The notes: a model not told the origin generated them from the sequence alone. 64,000 nt of DNA from Zygnema circumcarinatum SAG 698-1b (GCA_037447605.1 CM074805.1:1583361-1647360), one strand, 5' to 3'. Counted from the stretch's first letter, positions 14,625-60,719 are shown. Made by a program: numbers and translations.

Positions 14625-17600
14625 CTACCTCGGCACCCCCCCCAGGGCGTGCGCTTGATCCCTCGTGCCGTCCGAGCGCTGCTTGATCGCCTGCACATGC
14701 ACACGCATGCACATCCTTAAGGGGCAAGCTCGGAGGGAAGGAACCACCAAGAACACACTCAAGAAAGTGCTCTCTCGCCAACTTCAAGTGGCCACCAAAA
14801 ATTACAAAGGAATGTGACTGTCATGGGAATGCAAGCGGAGACAAGACAAGACAAGACAAGACAAGGCGCACCTCCATGCTGAGCATGACGCTTGCGAGGC
14901 ACTTGAGGCGGCGATGAGGCCACCGCGAGAGCCCCAAATCGCGACACCTCCTCTTCAGCAGCGTGGCCCCCACCCCGAGCTGCTTGGCAGCTTCGTTGAT
15001 CGGCATGGTGAAGTACTGCGCGGACAAAAACAGCAAACACATCCATCAAATTCGCACTCTGAATTGGTTTACAAACGAGAGCGAGTAAGGAGCCTGCGAA
15101 TAGAATGGAACATAGAGCTTACTAAACAAGTTGAGAGACCGACCGGCGTCTCACCTCAGACAGGTCCCGCAGAGTCATGGCCGCCAAACGGCCACTCGCA
15201 GTTTTCGGCCCACTATGTGTCGACCCCTCCATCTTGACGGGCTTCTTCGACCAGGCGATGCTTCCTAGAAGCTCCTGATGCAGCCCGGGGGGGATGGTGG
15301 CCTTCAGCTCGTTCCAAAGCGAGCTCGTCGACGCCATGGCGCTGCTATCGCTCCCCTTCAATGGCGACGGGGAGTGCGCGTCAGGAACATCCGCCATACC
15401 CGCCCCATCCGAGCCAATCTGTATGGGAGGGGGGTTCTCAGACATGGCCCCGCCGCTCTCTGTACAGTTGAAGGTGAAGTCGTTGGACCCTGACCTCGAC
15501 CTCGTTCCGCTTGCCGATGTATAGCGCGAGTGCGGTACAGCCCTCCCTGCGGCCGCCATGGATGCCAACCCCGGGAGACTCTCCTCCTTCGCCATGCTCT
15601 CCGCCACGACGTGCGCGGCGAGAGCGCGCAGCTGCTCAAGGATCAGACCGGAGTTCTCGCTTCCCGAAAGGAGGAGATTCTCCGCAGTCGCACCTTCATC
15701 ACGTGAGGGGTCCCGCTGCTCGCTCGTCTGCTCGCACGTGTGGCTGAGGGCAGCCATGGCGGAGGAGGTGAAGTTGGAGGAGGAGATCACGTCTGTCCCC
15801 GATAGGCCGGGCATTTTGCTCCAATGGGAGGGCTCCGCTTGCTGCCATAGCTGCTGACTCCTCTCTGAAGGGAAGGAGGAGCCCTGCGCCCTCCTGCTCT
15901 GTGCGAGCATGTCCGCCCACTCAGGCATGCTTCCGCAGTCGGCCTCTGCCTCTACTCCGGAAGCCGACAAGGGGCAGCCCGAGCAGCCCTCACAGAGAAG
16001 GTGCTCGCACACCGCAGAGAGAAGGTCGGGCCCGGTTTGGGAGAGATTGGGGGCTCTGGAAGCGGAGTCGAGAGAGGCGAGGTCGAACTGGGAGCGCATC
16101 GCCACGCTGTCACAGGAGGTGGAAGGGGCGGAGGAAAGGCTGCGGAGGAAGGTTGCTTCGAGTGGGCTCATGTTCCCATCTGGTTGCTGGGGAGGGAGAG
16201 GAGGGGGGTCCATGGCTGCTGCGGCGGAGGGCTCGCTGCTGCTGGAACCCCAACATCCTGTTTGGTCCTCACGGCTCTCATGGAACCAACGGGGCTTCTT
16301 TCCCCTCCCGGAGGAAGCCCATTCAAGGACCTGCTGAAGGGTGTTGGCGGAGCCTTCGTGATGGATGTCGTCGGAGGGTTGGGAGGGAGAGATGCTGGAG
16401 AGGAGTTGGCTTGTGGAACTCAAGCAAGAGAGAGCGTTGTTGTTCATTTCCTGCAAACAAGCCACAACCCATGTCAGCATGTGCATGTTAGGAACGTGGT
16501 ACAACACGGGACAACGGTAAAGTACATAGAAAACAAACACATATTCTTGCCTCAAACGTACCTTGAAGGAGAGATGGTCCTGGAAACCGAGTCCGCTGGA
16601 ATCCGCCACGTCCGGCTGAAAGTTCCTCGCCAAAACCTTGGTAGCTTCAAAACCAGGCCCAAGGTTGGCTTTCGACTTTTGCAACCCCAGGACCGCTGCC
16701 AGCGTTTGCTCACTTCCGGATGCCACGTGGCTAACTGACGACGTGGCACGTGTCGTTCCTTGGTTCGTCTCAAAGCGCTCGCCCCAACCTTGCGGCTTGT
16801 TGAAGGATATGGTGTCGGCAGCAGCAGCGTCCCGTTCCTCCCCGTCCTGCCCGTGAAGGAGCTCGTACTCTTTCAGCCGCACTGCGTACTCCACAAGCGC
16901 GAGATCCCGAGCGAGCAGAGGCACACTGTACAGGGACGGATTCCTGCACCACGTTCAAATCGCCGCGAAAAAAAACTTCAATCGACCGATGCGAAAGCGT
17001 CCACCTTCCCTACGACCCAAAAGGGCTGCAAATCGAAAGCTTGGAGGGGAGAGCGAGAGAGAGAGCGCGCGAGAGAGAGAGAGAGAGCGGGTCTGTCCGT
17101 ACTGTGAGAGGGAGAGCATGGGAGGCACCGCCATCTGCATGGGCCGATTGTTGCGGTATTCGAGCACGAGCTCGCAGCCGTCGCTGATGTGAAGGCGCGC
17201 GAGCAGCGCTGCGAAGTCGAGGCCCTCCGCGAGGGAGGCGAAGGCCTCCGGCGCCGACACGGAGAGCGGCGTGCAGGCCGCGCCGCGCAGCAGGAACTCG
17301 ACCGTCCGCACGTGCACGCGCCGCGCCTCCTCGTGCACGTGCACGCTCCGCCACCGCCCTGCTCACACCCGCCGGCCGGGCCCGTCAGAAGGGAGGCCAG
17401 GGGAGGAATGGGGATGCGCATGCATTGCATGAGTAGGGGATGGTGGGCATGTTGGTGTTGAACAACACGGGAGGGTTAGAGTTTGGGTCATGGTTAAGGG
17501 GAGGGATTGCGTGAGAAGAGGGTGGTGAGCTAGGAAAAGGGTGGGTTAAGGTGAGGAGCGTCTAGGATGGATGTATGGCAATGAAGGGAGCCAAGGAAGA

Positions 17601-20401: not shown

Positions 20402-21451
20402 ATGGAGGCCATGGCGGCGGGCGGGGGGGAGGCGCGCGTGTGGCCGGGTCTGGAGAAGTTCAGCGCGGTGCAGGCGCTGCTGGAGCAGAACCGCCTGCTG
20501 CTCGCCGAGATCAACCGCAACCACGACGCGCGCCTGCCGGAGGGCCTCGCGCGCAACGTGGCGCTCATCTGCGAGCTCAACCAGAACGTGGGCAAGGTCA
20601 GCCACTGCGCGTGAGGGCCTGCCTGTGGTTGGAGGGCGTGTCTGCGGATTTTCACGGGGATGAGCTATAGGGAGGAGTTGCGGGCGGGAAGTAGAGGAGG
20701 AGAGTTAGGGCTAGGGTTAGGGTTAGGGTTAGGGTTAGGGTTAGGGTTAGGGTTAGGGTTAGGGTTAGGGTTACAAGAGGATTAGATAATAAGTAGGGTT
20801 ATTACAGGAGTAGAGTTACTATTGGAGTTAGGGCGAGGGTTATGGTTACAGCATTAGAGTTAGGGTCAAGCTAGGATTAGGATTATTACAGGATAACCAT
20901 TATGTTTGGAGTTAGGGTTAGGGTTAACGCGGGATTAGAGTTAAGGTCAGGCTAGGATTAGGGTTGCTACAGGATTAAAAGTTAGAGTTGGATTTTATCT
21001 TAGGGTTAGGGTTAAGTTAGGAGTTAAGGGTTAGGTTTAGGTTAAGGGTCAGGTTTCGGCTAGGTCTAGGTCAAATTTGCATGTCATTTTTTTTCCTGAT
21101 TGTTGTCTTCGCGGTGTTACCAGATAGTTTGCCAGTGCAAGCATGGTGAAGGAGTTATCTGTGTTTAGTCAGCTGTGCTGGGACCTGACGGATTAGATAG
21201 CGACACTGCAGAGTATACTGCTGTCAAGCGCTTGATGGCAGGGCTGAAGCGCGGAGTATTAGGAGAGCTATTTTCTAACGGACTTCCTTCACTTTCAATT
21301 CAAGGGCATCCAGTAGATTCCTTTGTCAGTTCACATCTGGAATGGTGTTAACAAACCTGCTGCTTCGCACGATTGAATTCAGGTGGTGGAACTGTACGGT
21401 GATATTTCAAAATCCTTTATAAAGGCGTTCGGAAGCAGTAGCCAGCAGTGA
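20402..21451 (+). CDS. ELF4: EARLY FLOWERING 4-like (DUF1313) circadian clock protein, 87 aa
   Basis: Exons 20402-20596 and 21383-21451: FSAVQALLEQNRLLLAEINRNHDARLPEGLARNVALICELNQNVGK/VVELYGDISKSF, matching the ELF4 consensus QNRLLI.EINQNH...L.RNV.LIRELN.NI..VV.LY.DLS. Confidence 0.92.
20704..21070 (+). repeat. Interstitial telomeric array inside the ELF4 intron
   Basis: Nine perfect TTAGGG copies at 20717-20770, then degenerate TTAGGG/TTAGGA/TTAGAG units to ~21070. Confidence 0.92.
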
Positions 21452-22586: not shown

Positions 22587-27799
<5,213 letters not shown>

Positions 27800-28918: not shown

Positions 28919-31225
28919 TCAAAGCTTGTCCAAGAAATCGAGTATGATTTCACACGTTTGCTCCGGCTCCTCCACATGCGGGTAGTGCCCCACTTTGGCG
29001 ATGATCTCATACTTCACCATCCGCGTTGATTCCAGGACTCTCGCCAGCTCGTGCGCTTCTTCCAAAGGATTCGCAAAGTCAGGGTCCTTCTCTCCAAATA
29101 TAAAGAGCACAGGGCACGCCACTTTCCCCACCGCCTGCACACGTGAAAAAAAAACGAACCTCCCGTTATGAAGGGGCGGGCCGCCCTGCAGGGGAGCGAG
29201 CAGCCATGGCCGAGCTTGCGGAGCCTCAACACGAAGGTGCCCCTACCTCAAAGCAGGGCTGCTTGCTCCCACGTGCCAGTTCCGCCACAGCCCACAGGCG
29301 GCCCGGCTCATTCAGGGACATTCTCAAGGCGGCCCCATACTCTGGCAGGTCGGCGGGAGGCTTGCACTTGAAGAGGGACTTGTAGAAGGAGACCCATGCG
29401 GCCATGCCCCACGGCCATGCAAACAGCACGTAGCTGAGCGGCCGAAACCACAGATCCTGCAACGGGCCACATTCGGCTTTCACAATTAGGACTGTTGGGC
29501 TACTGGGCGGGGGCTTCATTCTTAACGAGGTTTGGAGGTTGACATATACTTGCAAGTTCGACTGATAGTGGGGTCACAATTCGGTTGCCGCCTTAGATAA
29601 TGTACTGACTTTGTGCAGACCCCTCACAGGCTAAGTGAAAGGAGCAAAAGCGCAGTTAAAAACGACTCTCTTTGACAAGGCCTGGCCATCCAGACCGAAC
29701 TGCGCCCTGCTATTAAATCCCGGCCACTTCCTTGCCCTCTAAGTTAAAGTCTGAATATTGTCCCGCCCTGCGGGAGCCATGCATGCGGAGCACGTGCGTT
29801 TGCACACAACGCTGCTCTGCGTGGTGAGGGGAGAGGGCGTACCTGAGGGAAGTCGCGAGCAACTGGCGCGAGGCCAATGACAGCCTTCACGAGCGCTGGA
29901 CACACGGTTGCCACTTTCAGTATAGCGGCCCTGAAGGCAACAACAACAACAAACAAGTACTACGTAAAAGGGTAAGGATAATATTCCATAAGGAGCTTCT
30001 CTTGTCTTAAGCGATTTTCTTGCCAACACAGTTTCCTCGGACAGTTGTCCACATCAGGGCCTGGAAGAGGCGTCTCCTTGCCTTCAATGCAAGTGAACGA
30101 GAGAGAGATAGAGAGAGATTCAAAAGCATGCAATATAGACTTATACTCTCCGAAAGAATCATCCTCCTTCAAAGACTGAATTCTATGCAACATTTGACAA
30201 CGATAGGTCGTCGGGCTATAGCTTTACGGCGTGCAGGAAGAAGTCAAACGAGGCGGTTCCGTGAGGTAAGGAAAGTCCCTTGCTAGGAAGTCTGCGTGCC
30301 TTTGGTCCCTTGACTGCATACACGAGGCTGCAACCAAGCTACGAGAGAAAATGCACACATGTGCGATAGCCAGGATGACAATCACGCGGCTAGGCATGGA
30401 AGTTGACAAAATAGACATACCCTGAAAGAGAGTTTCCAACAAGAATCACGGGTTTGCCGACACCGAGAAATTTGAGAATGACGGCAACGTCATTGGCCAC
30501 ATCAAGGGGCGAATAGGAAAGAAACCCGGCGGACGACTCCCCGTGGCCCCGCAGGTCGGCAAGGAGCACTCTGTGGCCCTGCAACCCTCCTCCACATTGC
30601 ATTTTTTTTTTGAAGACTTCGGCTTCGCATTCAAGATTCGTAAGCATCGGCCCGCTGCGCAACTGCCGCACTTGCAATCAGGTTTTCGTGCGCTGTTATA
30701 GTAAAGAAGCAGCTAAACAAGCTGTGCCGGACCCCCCAAAAAAATCCCTTATGAACGGTCACACCTTCTTAGCAAACAGGAAAGCTAAAAACATGGAGCT
30801 GAACTCACAGCTGCATACAGAAGCGGAGCCAGGAAACGGTAGCTCTGCCGGAAATCGCCCATGCCGGGCAGCAGCAAAAAAGTCTCCGACGACTTGCCCG
30901 GATTTCTGGGCACTCCGCTATCCTCCACTGCGATGGCCCCCGCGGAGTGTATGGCCACATCCTGCATGACGCCATCGCCACTCCATCAGCTTCCGGAGAG
31001 ATTACATCCATCCCCTCCCATTCCAGCCCATGTCTCCGTCTCCTTCCCCCCCTTCACCACACCTGCCCCTCTCCCCCTTTCCGCCTCCCTCTCCCCCTCC
31101 CCTGCAGGCAGAGTCCCCTCCCTTCCCCTCGCCCCCCCCCCCCCCCCCCCNNNNNNNNNNCCCCCCCCCCCCCCGCCGCGTGCCTTGACGGAACCGTCCT
31201 GGAAGACAGGCGGGAGCGGCGCCAT
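28919..31225 (-). CDS. Alpha/beta-fold hydrolase, 288 aa, resembling bacterial Abhydrolase_1/6 proteins
   Basis: Exons 31225-31184 (GC donor), 30961-30809, 30578-30421, 29930-29843, 29456-29247, 29134-28919 total 867 nt, in frame. Motifs LLPGMGDFRQSYRFLAPLL, DLRGHGESS, nucleophile elbow GNSLSG, acid GEKDPDF, His GHYPH. Confidence 0.88.
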
Positions 31226-31349
31226 GGCGGACGGGACCCCCTCCCCTTCCCCCTTCGCCCAGCAGGAGGGCGGCCAGCACGCCCGCATCCTCCCTCCCTC
31301 CTCCCTCCCTCCCTCGCACGCGCGGGGCCTGAAGCAGGGGGGGCGCGCC

Positions 31350-31398
31350 TGACGTCACGCATATGCTTTTGTGACGTCGTTACTATGGTTCCGTACAG
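31350..31398. promoter_or_regulatory. P1BS (PHR1-type site GNATATNC) flanked by TGACGT motifs in a divergent promoter
   Basis: GCATATGC at 31359-31366, TGACGTCA at 31350-31357, TGACGTCG at 31372-31379 and CCGTAC at ~31390. It lies between the hydrolase ATG (31225) and the PHT1 ATG (31544). Confidence 0.7.
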
Positions 31399-31543
31399 TC
31401 CCGCGTGAAACCGGAGAGGGAGTAGAGAGGGGGGAGAGGGAGAAGGTGAGGGTGAGGGAGAGGAGAAAGAGGGGGGGAAGGGGAAGAGGGTGGAAGAGAG
31501 ACAGCGAAGGGAGGGAGGGGGGAGGGAGGGAAAGAGGGTCGCC

Positions 31544-31675
31544 ATGGCGCGGCGCAACATCCTGCGGGCGCTGGACGCGGCGAAGACGAGCGCGTACCAC
31601 TTCACGGCCATCGTGATCGCCGGCATGGGCTTCTTCACGGACGCGTACGACCTCTTCTGGTGCGCGCTCTGCTCC

Positions 31676-31707
<32 letters not shown>

Positions 31708-34207
31708 GCTTGGTCTGTCAGCCGTTAGCTGGAGAAACCCCGTGCTCGCCTTTTAAGCCGACCGCCTCTATTGCATGCAGCATTTCCACAGTGACGAAGC
31801 TTTTAGGGCGGCTCTATTACTACGATCCCTCAACAGGGAAGCCCGGGTCGCTACCGCCGAGTGTTTCCATGGCCGTCACAGGCGTTGCGCTCTGCGGTAC
31901 TCTGGCTGGACAGGTGGTTATCACCTAGTCCCCTCCTCTCTGCAAATATTTCCCAGTGCAGAAATGTATCATTTTGCGGGCGGCTTGGCTTTTTTTTTTT
32001 TTTCTTTACTTTTCTAATTATGACATGAATAAACTTTATAGTCTTAATAAACTGCGCCCAAGTAGTCTTTAATACTTGCTCCATCAGTCCTTGCTCAAAT
32101 CCTTGTGTCCTTTAAGAAACGTTACTTGGCCTATGCCCGAATCACCGCAGGTAACGCCTTTCACATGGCTGACGGAACGATAAACAAAAGTGTGAGATCA
32201 AAGACTAATTGTTGAGCGCAAATAATTGTGCAGCTCTACTTCGGATGGCTTGGAGACAAACTGGGGAGAAAGACGACCTACGGCATTACTCTATTGCTGA
32301 TGATAAGCTGCTCCGTCGCTTCTGCCCTCTCCTTTGGTCACTCTGCCAAGGCAGTTATGACTACTCTCTGCTTCTTCCGCTTTTGGTTGGGCTTTGGAAT
32401 TGGAGGCGACTATCCCCTTTCAGCCACCATAATGTCAGAATACGCAAATGTGAAAACTCGAGGCGCCTTCATCGCTGCAGTTTTTGCGATGCAGGTGAGC
32501 CTCGCGTCGTCATGTCTTTTGATGTCAGCATTGCCGCATAAAAAGCTAGCTTACTTCTCCTTTGTATGCACTTTTTTCGTCTGTAAGAGCTGTTCTTTAC
32601 ACCTCCAGGAGGGAGCTGCGGGGGACAGGGTATCGGGATTTTGTGTGCTGCTGGTGTCTCTATTATAGTTTCCGCTATCTTTATGAGGGCTTTTGACAGT
32701 CCCTCCTTTGCGGAGGACCCCGTGGCATCAACTCCTCCTGAAGCGGACTATGTGTGGCGGATTGTCTTCTTGGTCGGAGCATTTCCTGCTGCGCTTACTT
32801 TCTACTGGCGGATGCAAATGCCAGAAACGGCGAGGTACACCGCCCTGGTGGAGAAGAATGCAATGAGAGCTGCTGCAGACATGGCGGAGGTCGGTCATGT
32901 CACTCACTTTTGCCAATATCAAAGTCGGGACACCATGTCACTCTTATGGGAGCGTTCAATGCTTGTTAGAATACTCCTCGAGCTGCTTGTGAGGTGAGTG
33001 TGGGTGAAGGGGAGAGGACGAGTGATAACGAATAGGTGTTGGGAGAGCAAGGAATTTGGGTTAATTTTTTTGCAGTTGGAAGGGGGATGCAGGTTCTTAA
33101 GGTGGATTTGAAGGAGTTGGATGGACCCGTCCTGACTGGCAAGCTGGAGTATTCCCTTTTCTCGCGAGAGTTTTTGCGGCGCCATGGCTGGCAGCTTTTG
33201 GGCACATGCTCCACGTGGTTCTTTCTGGACATCGCATACTACAGCCAGAACTTGTTTCAAAAGGACATTTTTACAGCGGTTGGATGGTTGCCATCCGGCA
33301 GGTCTATGAGTGCGATCGAGGAGGTCTATAAAATATCTCGCGCACAGGTAAAGTTGCCAGATTGAAAACTGATTGACTTCTGCAATTGAAAGATGTTGTA
33401 TCTCCTTCAACATTTTTCACGAGCTTGCTTGCTCTCTGACGTTATGCTGCAGGCATTGATCGCACTTTCTTCTACTGTACCTGGCTACTGGGTTACTGTA
33501 TTTACGGTAGATTGGCTCGGTCGATGGATCATTCAGTTTCAGGTACGAGTCATTCTGGATTAATGCATTCTTGAAGCACCCTGAATCTGTGTCGTGATCT
33601 CTGCTTTTGTTCACCATTTTCACGGAAGTTGTCAGAAACAGTTTCTTATCTGTTTGTCTGCCTGCAGGGATTCTTTTTCATGACTGTCTTTATGTCCATA
33701 TTGGCCGGAAACTATCCCAGTTTCAGAGGTGAGAAATGTCCTCAACCCAATGCACACGAGCTTTGCGGTGGAAATCCACTCGCTTTCGCCGTCCTTTATG
33801 GCTTCACCTTTTTTTTCGCTAACTTTGGTCCCAACTCAACGACTTTTATTATTCCTGCCGAGCTTTTCCCGGCTCGCTTGCGATCTACATGTCATGGACT
33901 CTCTGCTGCTGCTGGCAAAGCCGGAGCCATAGTTGGGACATTCGGTTTCTTATATGCAGCGCAGTCGAATGATCCATCCAAGTTCCCCGTTGATCCCGGC
34001 TACTCGAAAGGGATTGGATACCAGTATTCGCTAATGATATTGGCTATTACAAACGTTCTAGGGTTGTTCATGACGTTCTTTGTGCCAGAAACCCGCGGTA
34101 AAGCGTTAGAAGAGCTGTCAGGAGAGTTGTATGATGAAGAGTCTGATGAGGTCGAGGAAGAAAGTGGTATCGACGACGACGAGTACCCATCTCATGAGTA
34201 CATTTGA
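31544..34207 (+). CDS. PHT1: PHT1-family high-affinity inorganic phosphate:H+ symporter (MFS), 551 aa
   Basis: Exons 31544-31659, 31781-31913, 32234-32494, 32629-32889, 33093-33347, 33453-33542, 33668-34207 total 1656 nt. Motifs [21 protein letters not shown], signature [53 protein letters not shown]. Confidence 0.97.
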
Positions 34208-58352: not shown

Positions 58353-60719
58353 ATGGCGGGGCTGCGCAGAGGGGACCGCCATGGCGGCTCGGGCTGGAGC
58401 GCGGGAATGCGGACAGCAGTTTGGGACGAGGGCGAGGAGGAGGAGGAGGAGAAGGAGGAGGAGGAGGCGAAGCGGCGGCGCAGGGGCGCTGCGGGCGCGG
58501 CCACGAGGCGGACGGGGGAGGCGGAGCGCGGGGCGGGTGGAGGACCGCCGCGCGGGAGAGCTGCAGAAGGGACGTCCGGAGCTTGCCACGTGTCGGCCAC
58601 GACGTCGCTCATACCGCCTTCCGGGGCCCTCACGGGGGGGGACGGGGAAGGTGAGGTGATGGGATGGGGGCCATGCCCTCGCGCGGGTTAGAACGAGCGT
58701 CCTTGCTATGTCCAGTGCTGAGGGCGGTGGGGGGCTTTCTTGGAGCACGAGTGTCGCCAATACATGCTGTGAAATTGTGTCCGTGCGAAACATGAGATGT
58801 AGGAGTAAGAAAAGCCATTCGCTTGAGCTCTCGGTTTTAACCATATCGCGTACGCCGTTACCATCATCATTGTGATGAGTTTTTTGAAAAAACGACTCAT
58901 CAGAATGGTTGTTCTCAACAAGCTTTGATGGAAGCAATTTGTCTCAACATACAGCATGCGTAAAAGTACGAACTACATGAAGAAGCACTTCAGTCAAGTA
59001 AAGTTACAGATGTCGAGTGGCTGTCCTTGCAAGAAAGAAGGAAACAATGAGCGTCAATTAACAACTATAGAAACACAAATGATGCTGTTCTTGTACATAA
59101 GAAGTGAAGCAGCCATTGCTGCTTCCAGGTGCAACCTCAGACGGAGAATGTGTGAGTGGCTGGCACCGTGACATCAGTCAAGCGATCGTCGTGACAGACA
59201 TGACCGGCTGCATCACGCACTGGTGAGCTGTCAGACACCCTCCCCCCTCGCCCCTCGCCATCATCTCGTGATGTGTTCATAACTAATGGTTCCAATGTGG
59301 TCCAATACTTTCTGAAGCGGATCATCTGCCCTCCCCTTCATTCTGGATGATTTCACATGTACGTTTGATCCATGTATGCCTCTGACTACCGTGCACAACA
59401 CGCAAACATTGAAGGTGATCTCGGAAGAAACCCATGTTCCTCACTCTCCGCATCGCTTTCTTCTCTCTTAGGAACGAGGCAGCTTCGCAGCTCTTCGGTT
59501 GGCCGCCAGAAGGAGCGATTGGGAAGTACCGCTCAAACTTGATACCGGCCCTGCACGCGGACTTGGAGGAGGAGAGGGCCATGGAGGTCTTTGAGCATCT
59601 CCGGCGGGGCCGCCCCTGGGCGGGGGAGTACTCCGTACACTCCCGCCACCGCGGGAACATTCAGGTCATGGTGAGCCCTCCCTCCCTCCCTCCCTCCCTC
59701 CCTCCCTCCCNNNNNNNNNNCCTCCCTCCCTCCCTCCGCTTTGGGGCCTCCTCGTCCTCCCGCTGAAGGGAAGGCAGAGGGAGACTCGCACCGAGAAGAC
59801 TTCTACTCACAACTATGGCGGAGGGAGGGGGGGGAGGGCAGGGGACGGACATGCCTCTGCTCGACAGCAGGGGGGCGCTGGTGGGCATTGCGGAGGCTCT
59901 GTGTGACGTCTCAGCAGGAAGGGTGCTCGAGGAGAAGATTGAATCGCTCAATAGCCAAATACGGCAGATCACGGGGGTGCGTAGCATGGCATGTAGGACT
60001 GCATAATCTGCGGCATTTGAAGTGGCTGGAAGCGCACACATTGCAGACCATGATCGTGGACTGTGGTGGCAGCGGAAAAGCATTGATTCAGATTCAACTG
60101 CATGGTAGAATGTAAAATGTTCATCAAAGAGAAGAAACTGTTGTCTAAGGGCAAGATGGCAACTGTGGGGGAACAGGAATTGTTGGCGGTCTGCCAGAAA
60201 GCTAATCGCACGGGAACTCGTATTGCTTTAGAAATTATGGAGTCTTCTTTCTCCACGAGGGAAAGGATAAAATCGGTCTTGGCATGGGATAGAAGAGAGC
60301 AGATGAAGGTACGCATGGAGCTTTGAGAATTGTTCCCGATGCTTCCTTTGCTTTCGCCAGTCGTCATCCACCCGTCGGCCTCTTGAGAGCTCCCACCATC
60401 GTTGAAATCAGCATACTTTCTTAGTTTTTCGTTGCAGTCAAATCCTACATGATTTCAGCCTTCAAAAATCTGTCTCAATCCCATACCTTTTCCTCATGCT
60501 TTCTTTCATCCACCCTTGTACCTTCACCTTCATTACCCCTCCTTCCACTCTCCTCCAGTTGCCGCACTCTCTCCACTCCTGTCTCCTCCTCCCTTGCTCA
60601 TCTCCCTAGCGCACAACCTGCCTTCACATGTATCTCATGTGAGTAATGTATCACTTCAGATGATTGCCGTCGAGTATCACAACTCCACGACACGGAGTGC
60701 CTTGAGATTCTATCCATAA
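58353..60719 (+). CDS. PAS-domain protein with acidic/basic N-terminus and short coiled-coil C-terminus (~314 aa model; 3' end uncertain)
   Basis: Exons 58353-58650, 59129-59222, 59472-59670, 59842-59976, 60150-60308, 60660-60719 are phase-consistent. PAS core: AIVVTDMTGCITHW/NEAASQLFGWPPEGAIGK...GRPWAGEYSVHSRHRGNIQVM/GTDMPLLDSRGALVGIAEALCDVS. Confidence 0.72.

Follow-up and report, generated by a model that had tools for sequence, protein, structure and literature searches.

The locus described here lies in a 64,000-nt stretch of the Zygnema circumcarinatum SAG 698-1b genome (GCA_037447605.1 CM074805.1:1583361-1647360), which we refer to as the window and number from its first letter. Between positions 28,919 and 34,207 two genes diverge from one short spacer, an alpha/beta-hydrolase gene on the minus strand and a gene for a PHT1 phosphate:H+ symporter on the plus strand. 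Their start codons, ATG 31225 (minus strand) and ATG 31544 (plus strand), both point outward and are separated by 318 bp (31226-31543), as described in the initial annotation, and the identities it gave to the two genes are borne out by family profile matches of the exons. The divergent starts are less than 1 kb apart with no gene between them, as in a bidirectional pair, and a bidirectional promoter shared by PHT1 and the hydrolase is well supported. We consider it probable that the two genes form a true head-to-head pair and that a single short bidirectional promoter, lacking a TATA box, serves both. To call the pair an operon-like unit, as was done earlier, is an overstatement of what are ordinary head-to-head genes; the overall arrangement is of a known kind, with one testable candidate site, a palindromic octamer that fits the consensus of the PHR1 site P1BS.

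The PHT1 gene has seven exons (1656 nt, 551 aa), with GT..AG at every intron and no internal stops. The spliced models of both genes were searched exon by exon, and the features of the PHT1 model are as follows.

31544-31659, plus strand: PHT1 exon 1, TIGR00887 positions 1-33, ending in a split Cys codon
31781-31913, plus strand: PHT1 exon 2, TIGR00887 positions 35-73
32234-32494, plus strand: PHT1 exon 3, TIGR00887 positions 74-160 (136 bits), with the PHT1 signature
32629-32889, plus strand: PHT1 exon 4, TIGR00887 positions 161-246
33093-33347, plus strand: PHT1 exon 5, TIGR00887 positions 275-340
33453-33542, plus strand: PHT1 exon 6, TIGR00887 positions 342-370
33668-34207, plus strand: PHT1 exon 7, TIGR00887 positions 371-502, with an acidic tail and the stop codon

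TIGR00887 is the best family for all seven exons, which tile it from 1 to 502 without overlap except at the variable central loop (247-274). The exon scores sum to about 552 bits against a curated cut-off of 610.3, exon-wise scoring losing score at the edges. Exon 3, which contains the PHT1 signature, is 80-89% identical to land-plant PHT1 fragments, and the best solved relative of exon 7 is rice PT11 (9kmq, E 2.9e-31). The algal protein thus shares with the plant PHT1 and yeast Pho84 symporters (TIGR00887; rice PT11, 9kmq; Piriformospora PiPT, 7sp5/8fvz) the profile end to end and the signature, and its N-terminus, beginning MA, is of the plant type, whereas its long acidic C-terminal tail sets it apart from them. 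The gene structure differs as well, since a land-plant PHT1 locus among those collected (L018) apparently has one intron (two adjacent Sugar_tr open reading frames, ORFs, about 320 bp apart) compared with seven exons in the alga.

The hydrolase gene has six exons (861 nt, 286 aa), again with GT..AG at all introns and no internal stops, and its Ser-Asp-His triad is intact. The exons tile the homologues.

28919-29134, minus strand: hydrolase exon 6, which contributes the catalytic residues Asp (in GEKDPDF) and His (in GHYPH) and also the stop codon
29247-29456, minus strand: hydrolase exon 5, cap region, WPWGMAAWVSFYKSLF...
29843-29930, minus strand: hydrolase exon 4
30421-30578, minus strand: hydrolase exon 3, with the nucleophile elbow G-N-S-L-S-G and matches to Pfam Abhydrolase_1/6
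30809-30961, minus strand: hydrolase exon 2, DVAIHSAG...PGMGDFRQSYRFLAPLLYAA
30962-31189, minus strand: hydrolase intron 1, GT..AG, which contains the N gap and a poly-G/poly-C run as well as a TGA, in frame, at 30986-30988
31151-31160, no strand: assembly gap of 10 N within a C homopolymer (19 C before it and 15 C after it), intronic in the hydrolase model
31190-31225, minus strand: hydrolase exon 1, ATG + 12 codons, MAPLPPVFQDGS, the ATG lying inside CGCCATGGCG, with the GT donor at 31189

On this model the assembly gap falls inside intron 1; therefore no exon is broken and frame continuity across the gap is irrelevant. The 318-bp distance between the two start codons is independent of the gap.

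Comparison with the homologues identifies ATG 31225 as the predicted real start codon of the hydrolase. The peptide that follows it, M-A-P-L-P-P-V-F-Q-D-G-S, fits the N-terminal motif of the eukaryotic homologues, all of which have Met, 5-12 residues and then [TA]LPx[IVL]F[PS]xG; the LPx[IVL]F motif (in extended form LPx[IVL]F..G) is found in eight of the 123 family members fetched, all of them from the eukaryotic clade. When a hidden Markov model of the motif was run against the whole window in six frames (117,802 residues), its top match was at 31222 on the minus strand (score 9.5, E 0.17), and this match is clearly significant when set against just the few hundred residues that lie upstream of the hydrolase. 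Splicing from GT 31189 to AG 30962 joins MAPLPPVFQDGS to DVAIHSAG... in phase 0, and the resulting spacing to the conserved EDSG strand is as in the homologues, with I-H aligned and one residue fewer overall. Both start codons of the pair, 31225 and 31544, are contained in copies of the palindromic 10-mer CGCCATGGCG, of which the window holds seven (at 15332, 31220, 31540, 45788, 46738, 50025 and 58377) against 0.10 expected. This 10-mer looks like a preferred start-codon context of the genome and could aid gene calling; because it is palindromic, it is uninformative on strand.

Our first model began the hydrolase at M30967, and it was dropped after the N-terminal motif had been compared with that of the homologues. 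That start had been adopted because of the TGA that lies in frame upstream, between ATG 31225 and M30967 and six codons before the latter, and because bacterial homologues are short and begin similarly close to the first strand. ATG 30967 also opens the first clearly hydrolase-like stretch of the minus-strand frame, and the frame from ATG 31225, if read unspliced, enters the N/poly-C run and ends at the same TGA. With a start at M30967, ATG 31225 would be a spurious upstream ATG, the gap would lie in the promoter and the genes would be about 576 bp or more apart. We regard this as very unlikely, since LPPVF right after ATG 31225 fits the eight eukaryotic homologues without exception and lies at a matching distance from the EDSG strand, the donor and acceptor join the exons in phase 0, ATG 31225 stands in the start-codon context described above and six upstream ATGs are crowded into the 64 nt before 30967. 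In addition, a metagenome contig with the closest relative of exon 2 (L015, 72% identical) has Leu instead of Met at the position of M30967; it keeps the same CAG acceptor, and shares the junction CAG|G[AT]GTGGCC with the alga, without an ATG there.

The spacer between ATG 31225 and ATG 31544 is built as a mirror, in that each gene, on its own sense strand, is preceded by a GA-rich tract that runs from the core to the ATG.

31226-31320, no strand: CT-rich, low-complexity arm, marked by its purine profile and tandem repeats, GA-rich on the hydrolase sense strand and probably the hydrolase leader
31321-31400, no strand: non-repetitive promoter core of about 80 bp, normal complexity
31350-31357, no strand: C-box/CRE-type palindrome TGACGTCA
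31359-31366, no strand: palindromic octamer GCATATGC, a predicted site fitting the P1BS consensus GNATATNC
31372-31378, no strand: second TGACGTC box, 22 bp from the first, start to start
31400-31543, plus strand: GA-rich arm, 75-95% purine, without ATG, probably the PHT1 leader

The purine fraction is 0.12-0.38 at 31240-31320 compared with 0.80-0.95 at 31400-31520. Low-complexity repeats make up both arms but not the core; the latter has no TATA box. The plus strand carries no ATG at 31388-31543, the spacer ORFs give only low-complexity translations, and Rfam has no match anywhere in the 64-kb window. A single bidirectional promoter with outward leaders would be expected to look like this. 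Distances of less than 1 kb between ATGs, the lack of a TATA box and GA-rich tracts on each sense strand are traits that the alga has in common with plant head-to-head promoters, and mapping of transcription starts in Arabidopsis has shown GA elements to form one class of core promoter in plants. Compared with plant bidirectional promoters, the algal spacer is unusually short, at 318 bp with both leaders counted, and nearly mirror-like in composition.

The two TGACGTC boxes of the core give perfect 8-nt arms, GACGTCAC and GTGACGTC, which are 12 nt apart, and the 22 bp between the starts of the boxes is about two helical turns. An as-1/ocs-type element, in which two TGACG motifs lie about 12 bp apart, was considered and rejected, the motifs here being 22 bp apart. 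The octamer GCATATGC is located 22 bp left of the spacer midpoint, at distances of 133 bp (hydrolase) and 177 bp (PHT1) from the two start codons, in agreement with the earlier description of a P1BS-consensus octamer near the middle of the spacer, and the TGACGT flanks also described are present as TGACGT(C) on both sides of it, at 31350 and 31372.

From this anatomy a mechanism can be proposed in which the core would have transcription starts on either side, from which the GA-rich leaders would be transcribed outward. The two C-box palindromes would be bZIP sites and the source of the two-way activity of the core, and the palindromic GCATATGC between them, 1 bp from the first, may be a site for a PHR-type MYB-CC dimer. 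If used, the octamer would, by virtue of where it lies and of its symmetry, influence both genes. We think it likely that regulatory input from the spacer core is common to both genes. The bZIP factor HY5 binds the AtPHT1;1 promoter according to a passage of PMC7973493 that cites Sakuraba 2018, and a role for C-boxes at a PHT1 gene is therefore plausible.

The partner of PHT1 in this pair belongs to an uncharacterised alpha/beta-fold hydrolase family. Its putative nucleophile Ser (G-N-S-L-S-G, exon 3) is followed by the Asp of GEKDPDF and the His of GHYPH (exon 6) in the canonical order of a serine hydrolase, and the catalytic residues fall on invariant columns of the family alignment (S117, D236/D238, H269/H272). 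Only generic alpha/beta-hydrolase models are matched, all below their cut-offs, and for named subfamilies (PcaD, MenH, BioH, haloalkane dehalogenase and others) neither the exons nor the full-length homologues scored above 76 bits in NCBIfam, where cut-offs are 172-430. A profile built from full-length homologues has epoxide hydrolases as its top matches, but over the N-terminal half only; among solved structures matched along their full length, those closest to it are esterases, a haloperoxidase, the polyesterase RPA1511 and monoacylglycerol lipases. No signal peptide was seen by eye. Judged by these features, the protein is most likely a cytosolic carboxyl-ester hydrolase of the esterase, lipase or lactonase class, carboxylic-ester hydrolysis being the most likely activity because of the Ser nucleophile, which does not suit a phosphoesterase role. 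Organophosphate scavenging, one of the functions suggested in the initial annotation, is a poor fit to a Ser-Asp-His carboxyl-ester-type fold.

The same annotation had called the esterase/lipase bacterial-type, which is half right. The family is large in bacteria (777 matches at E < 1e-10), but the nearest relatives of the algal protein are eukaryotic, namely proteins of the chytrids Polychytrium, Synchytrium, Rhizophlyctis, Blyttiomyces, Dinochytrium and Irineochytrium and of the bdelloid rotifer Adineta vaga, together with two metagenome proteins. The algal exons are 45-50% identical to the chytrid and rotifer proteins and 40-45% to the bacterial ones, and an exhaustive search of 1.84 billion representatives with the last exon gave a best identity of 51%. 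With this family, which comprises members from Actinomycetota, Chloroflexota and other bacteria and the small eukaryotic clade, the alga shares PGMGDFR..YRFLAP, the cap motif WG..AW..F/YKSLF and GxKDPDF...GHYPH. Bacterial members have H-S-x-G at the elbow where the alga has N-S-L-S, and they are without the LPx[IVL]F motif, which the alga has and which is found only in eukaryotes. The hydrolase (28919-31225) thus sits in a small eukaryotic clade (chytrids, the bdelloid Adineta, the alga and a few metagenome eukaryotes) inside a large bacterial family, and this patchy distribution bears on the question of whether the gene originated from soil bacteria. A family member of Longilinea lies between a YhhN-family gene and a TetR gene, which is a faint lipid hint only.

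A transcript-like sequence from another organism was also found (L014, a 1002-bp contig of Logan ERR11260149). It is intron-less and encodes a hydrolase about 50% identical to the algal one, with a frame shift between the parts matching exon 4 and exon 5 and an S/P-rich N-terminus, open at the contig end, that is unlike that of the alga.

Adjacency of the two genes is not conserved in the distant relatives for which it could be judged. No phosphate transporter lies within 8 kb of the hydrolase homologue at the three loci of Polychytrium (L020), Synchytrium (L021) and Adineta (L027); this is a weak test of conserved adjacency, as the collections searched held no close algal orthologue with flanks. 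The two contigs with the closest relatives of exon 2, L015 and L016, show no PHT1 in 4.5 kb. These contigs come from two independent ENA metagenome assemblies, and in both (L015:670-2878 and L016:601-2807) the N-terminal exons are on the opposite strand to the C-terminal exons, an arrangement that is an inversion, a pseudogene or two partial copies. When metagenomes were scanned with hydrolase exon 2, four short matches (19-24 residues) emerged, uninformative on neighbouring genes, and loci on bacterial genome contigs were discarded for synteny since they matched solely through the generic GHYPHVEE end. In Polychytrium (L020:12377-13529) the hydrolase homologue has, at a distance of 3 kb, a cyclin gene of PF08613, a family that includes the PHO80-like cyclins. 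The arrangement is probably a coincidence because it is not repeated at the Synchytrium locus.

Phosphate-starvation control of this promoter would act through the octamer. Its consensus GNATATNC occurs 14 times in the 64-kb window against 8.05 expected, a count reached in two of 100 shuffles. In the proximal promoter it is represented by GCATATGC alone, as there are no one-mismatch copies of GNATATNC at 30960-31550 and no second copy in the spacer; neither an excess over chance nor multiple copies distinguish the site. What is unusual is its placement, between two C-boxes in the sole non-repetitive 80 bp of the spacer. At the site density of the window a P1BS is expected in about 2% of 80-bp intervals, and this assessment of placement is post hoc. 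Elsewhere in the window, three GNATATNC sites lie within 770 bp at 23173-23943, an AT-richer stretch in which no recognisable coding ORF was seen; this cluster is probably a composition effect.

There is precedent in land plants for a site of this kind. For Arabidopsis SQD2 the exact octamer GCATATGC is listed as a P1BS, at -188, and in several starvation marker genes of Arabidopsis just one P1BS is present within 300 bp (PMC4991007). The alga likewise has its GNATATNC octamer within 200 bp of the ATGs, as in the P1BS/PHR1 promoters of AtSQD2, AtPAP10 and AtPHT1;1, and differs from land-plant P1BS promoters in that its candidate site is jammed between two C-boxes. P1BS was chosen for an engineered bidirectional promoter because it is palindromic; engineered P1BS enhancers were active in both orientations, a starvation-driven bidirectional promoter was built in Arabidopsis, and promoter strength rose with copy number (PMC5398999). 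In the EZ2 enhancer of PLDZ2, used in such engineering, the palindromic site works both ways, and the octamer of the alga is also palindromic; EZ2 contains two P1BS copies compared with one in the alga. By a statement of the authors of that work, very few natural bidirectional promoters have been demonstrated to answer one stimulus (PMC5398999). Our word searches of the literature for natural head-to-head or divergent P1BS pairs returned no paper, which is weak evidence of absence.

Three readings of the promoter have to be weighed. In the one closest to the initial annotation, a PHR1-type factor on the single P1BS would induce PHT1 and the hydrolase together under starvation, the hydrolase serving lipid remodelling or ester scavenging. 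The site lies close to both ATGs, its octamer is the one listed for SQD2, a starvation lipid-remodelling gene (PMC4991007), an engineered P1BS enhancer drives two reporters divergently (PMC5398999), PHR1-SPX1 is, by one statement in PMC7672586, present since chlorophytes, and the YhhN-family (lysoplasmalogenase-type) gene beside one bacterial homologue is a faint pointer to lipids. Nevertheless, the count of GNATATNC is at chance level, the Chlamydomonas PHT1-type genes PTA1 and PTA3 carry P1BS yet are down-regulated under starvation (PMC7578391), P1BS enrichment in Marchantia is similar in up- and down-regulated genes as far as a passage in PMC7672586 states, the chytrid and rotifer homologues have no adjoining phosphate transporter, and a Ser-His-Asp alpha/beta hydrolase is not a phosphoesterase. 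Several further observations weigh against co-induction or against the shared-promoter model itself. As many as 6.8% of the 318-bp intervals in the window contain one GNATATNC, and the octamer alone is not significant because of this. Three palindromes are packed within 29 bp, and the factors binding them may therefore compete instead of cooperating, while the binding of bZIPs to C-boxes is an assumption carried over to this alga from land plants. On the minus strand an in-frame ATG lies upstream at 31288, and the 21 codons from there to ATG 31225 contain no stop; a start there could add 21 residues, MRACWPPSCWAKGEGEGVPSA, or transcription could start downstream of 31288. Finally, our look-ups retrieved no same-species transcript, transcription start site or expression record, and for this reason the start sites, the leaders and any co-regulation are only inferred; exact look-ups of two window ORFs for same-species transcripts or annotated proteins gave no match, and a word search with PHT1 exon 3 gave no 100% match. 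We thus judge joint control by a PHR1-type factor to be rather unlikely, and to the same degree we doubt the prediction that starvation induces the two genes by way of this site. That the locus is a natural compact starvation promoter, with one P1BS bracketed by two bZIP boxes switching on PHT1 and a eukaryote-clade hydrolase, is a still more tentative proposal, which we would call unlikely.

The octamer may instead be a chance match, the promoter being run by the C-box/bZIP pair and GA-rich elements in, for example, a constitutive, light-dependent or stress-dependent manner; in that case the PHT1 of this locus would be a low-affinity or housekeeping transporter, and its neighbour functionally unrelated. 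Such a view accords with the 14 GNATATNC sites being mostly away from gene starts, three of them in one AT-richer stretch, with the occurrence of paired GACGTC boxes also at 58571 and 58601, and with the fact that streptophyte algae also own PTB-type Na+/Pi transporters, which are possible carriers of the starvation response (PMC11528361; PMC7578391). It has to contend with the presence of the octamer in the only 80 bp of complex sequence, where about one in fifty such intervals would be expected to hold a P1BS, and with the induction of most land-plant PHT1 genes by starvation through P1BS (PMC11528361). A chance match is quite possible, if short of probable, and the responsiveness of this PHT1 gene to phosphate supply we put close to evenly balanced, on the lower side. 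A third arrangement would have the P1BS serving PHT1 only, with the hydrolase insulated from the starvation signal by a core promoter of its own in the CT-rich arm. Co-expression of plant head-to-head genes is common and far from universal, and few natural bidirectional promoters have been demonstrated to answer one stimulus both ways, according to PMC5398999; with the site just 133 bp away from the hydrolase start and without any visible insulator, however, such a division appears quite unlikely.

Other genes in the window were recognised in passing. An ELF4-like ORF (…NRLLLAEINRNHDARLPEGLARNVALICELNQNVGKV) at about 20440-20610 on the plus strand and exons resembling a UBA5/E1-type activating enzyme at 25447-26639 on the minus strand were read by eye only, and a WRKY-like ORF is also near the gene pair. 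Together with the plant-type PHT1, the WRKY- and ELF4-like ORFs are in keeping with a streptophyte alga.

What this work establishes firmly is a corrected set of gene models, the intronic position of the assembly gap and a defined 30-bp candidate element. If starvation control through that element is true, the spacer would be one of the rare promoters in nature through which a single nutrient signal controls genes on both sides, and the locus would be a ready-made minimal two-way starvation switch. It would extend the logic of P1BS to algal relatives of land plants. It would also add a new starvation-induced ester or lipid hydrolase, from a eukaryotic clade otherwise known only from chytrids and bdelloid rotifers, and would give this unstudied hydrolase family its first physiological context.

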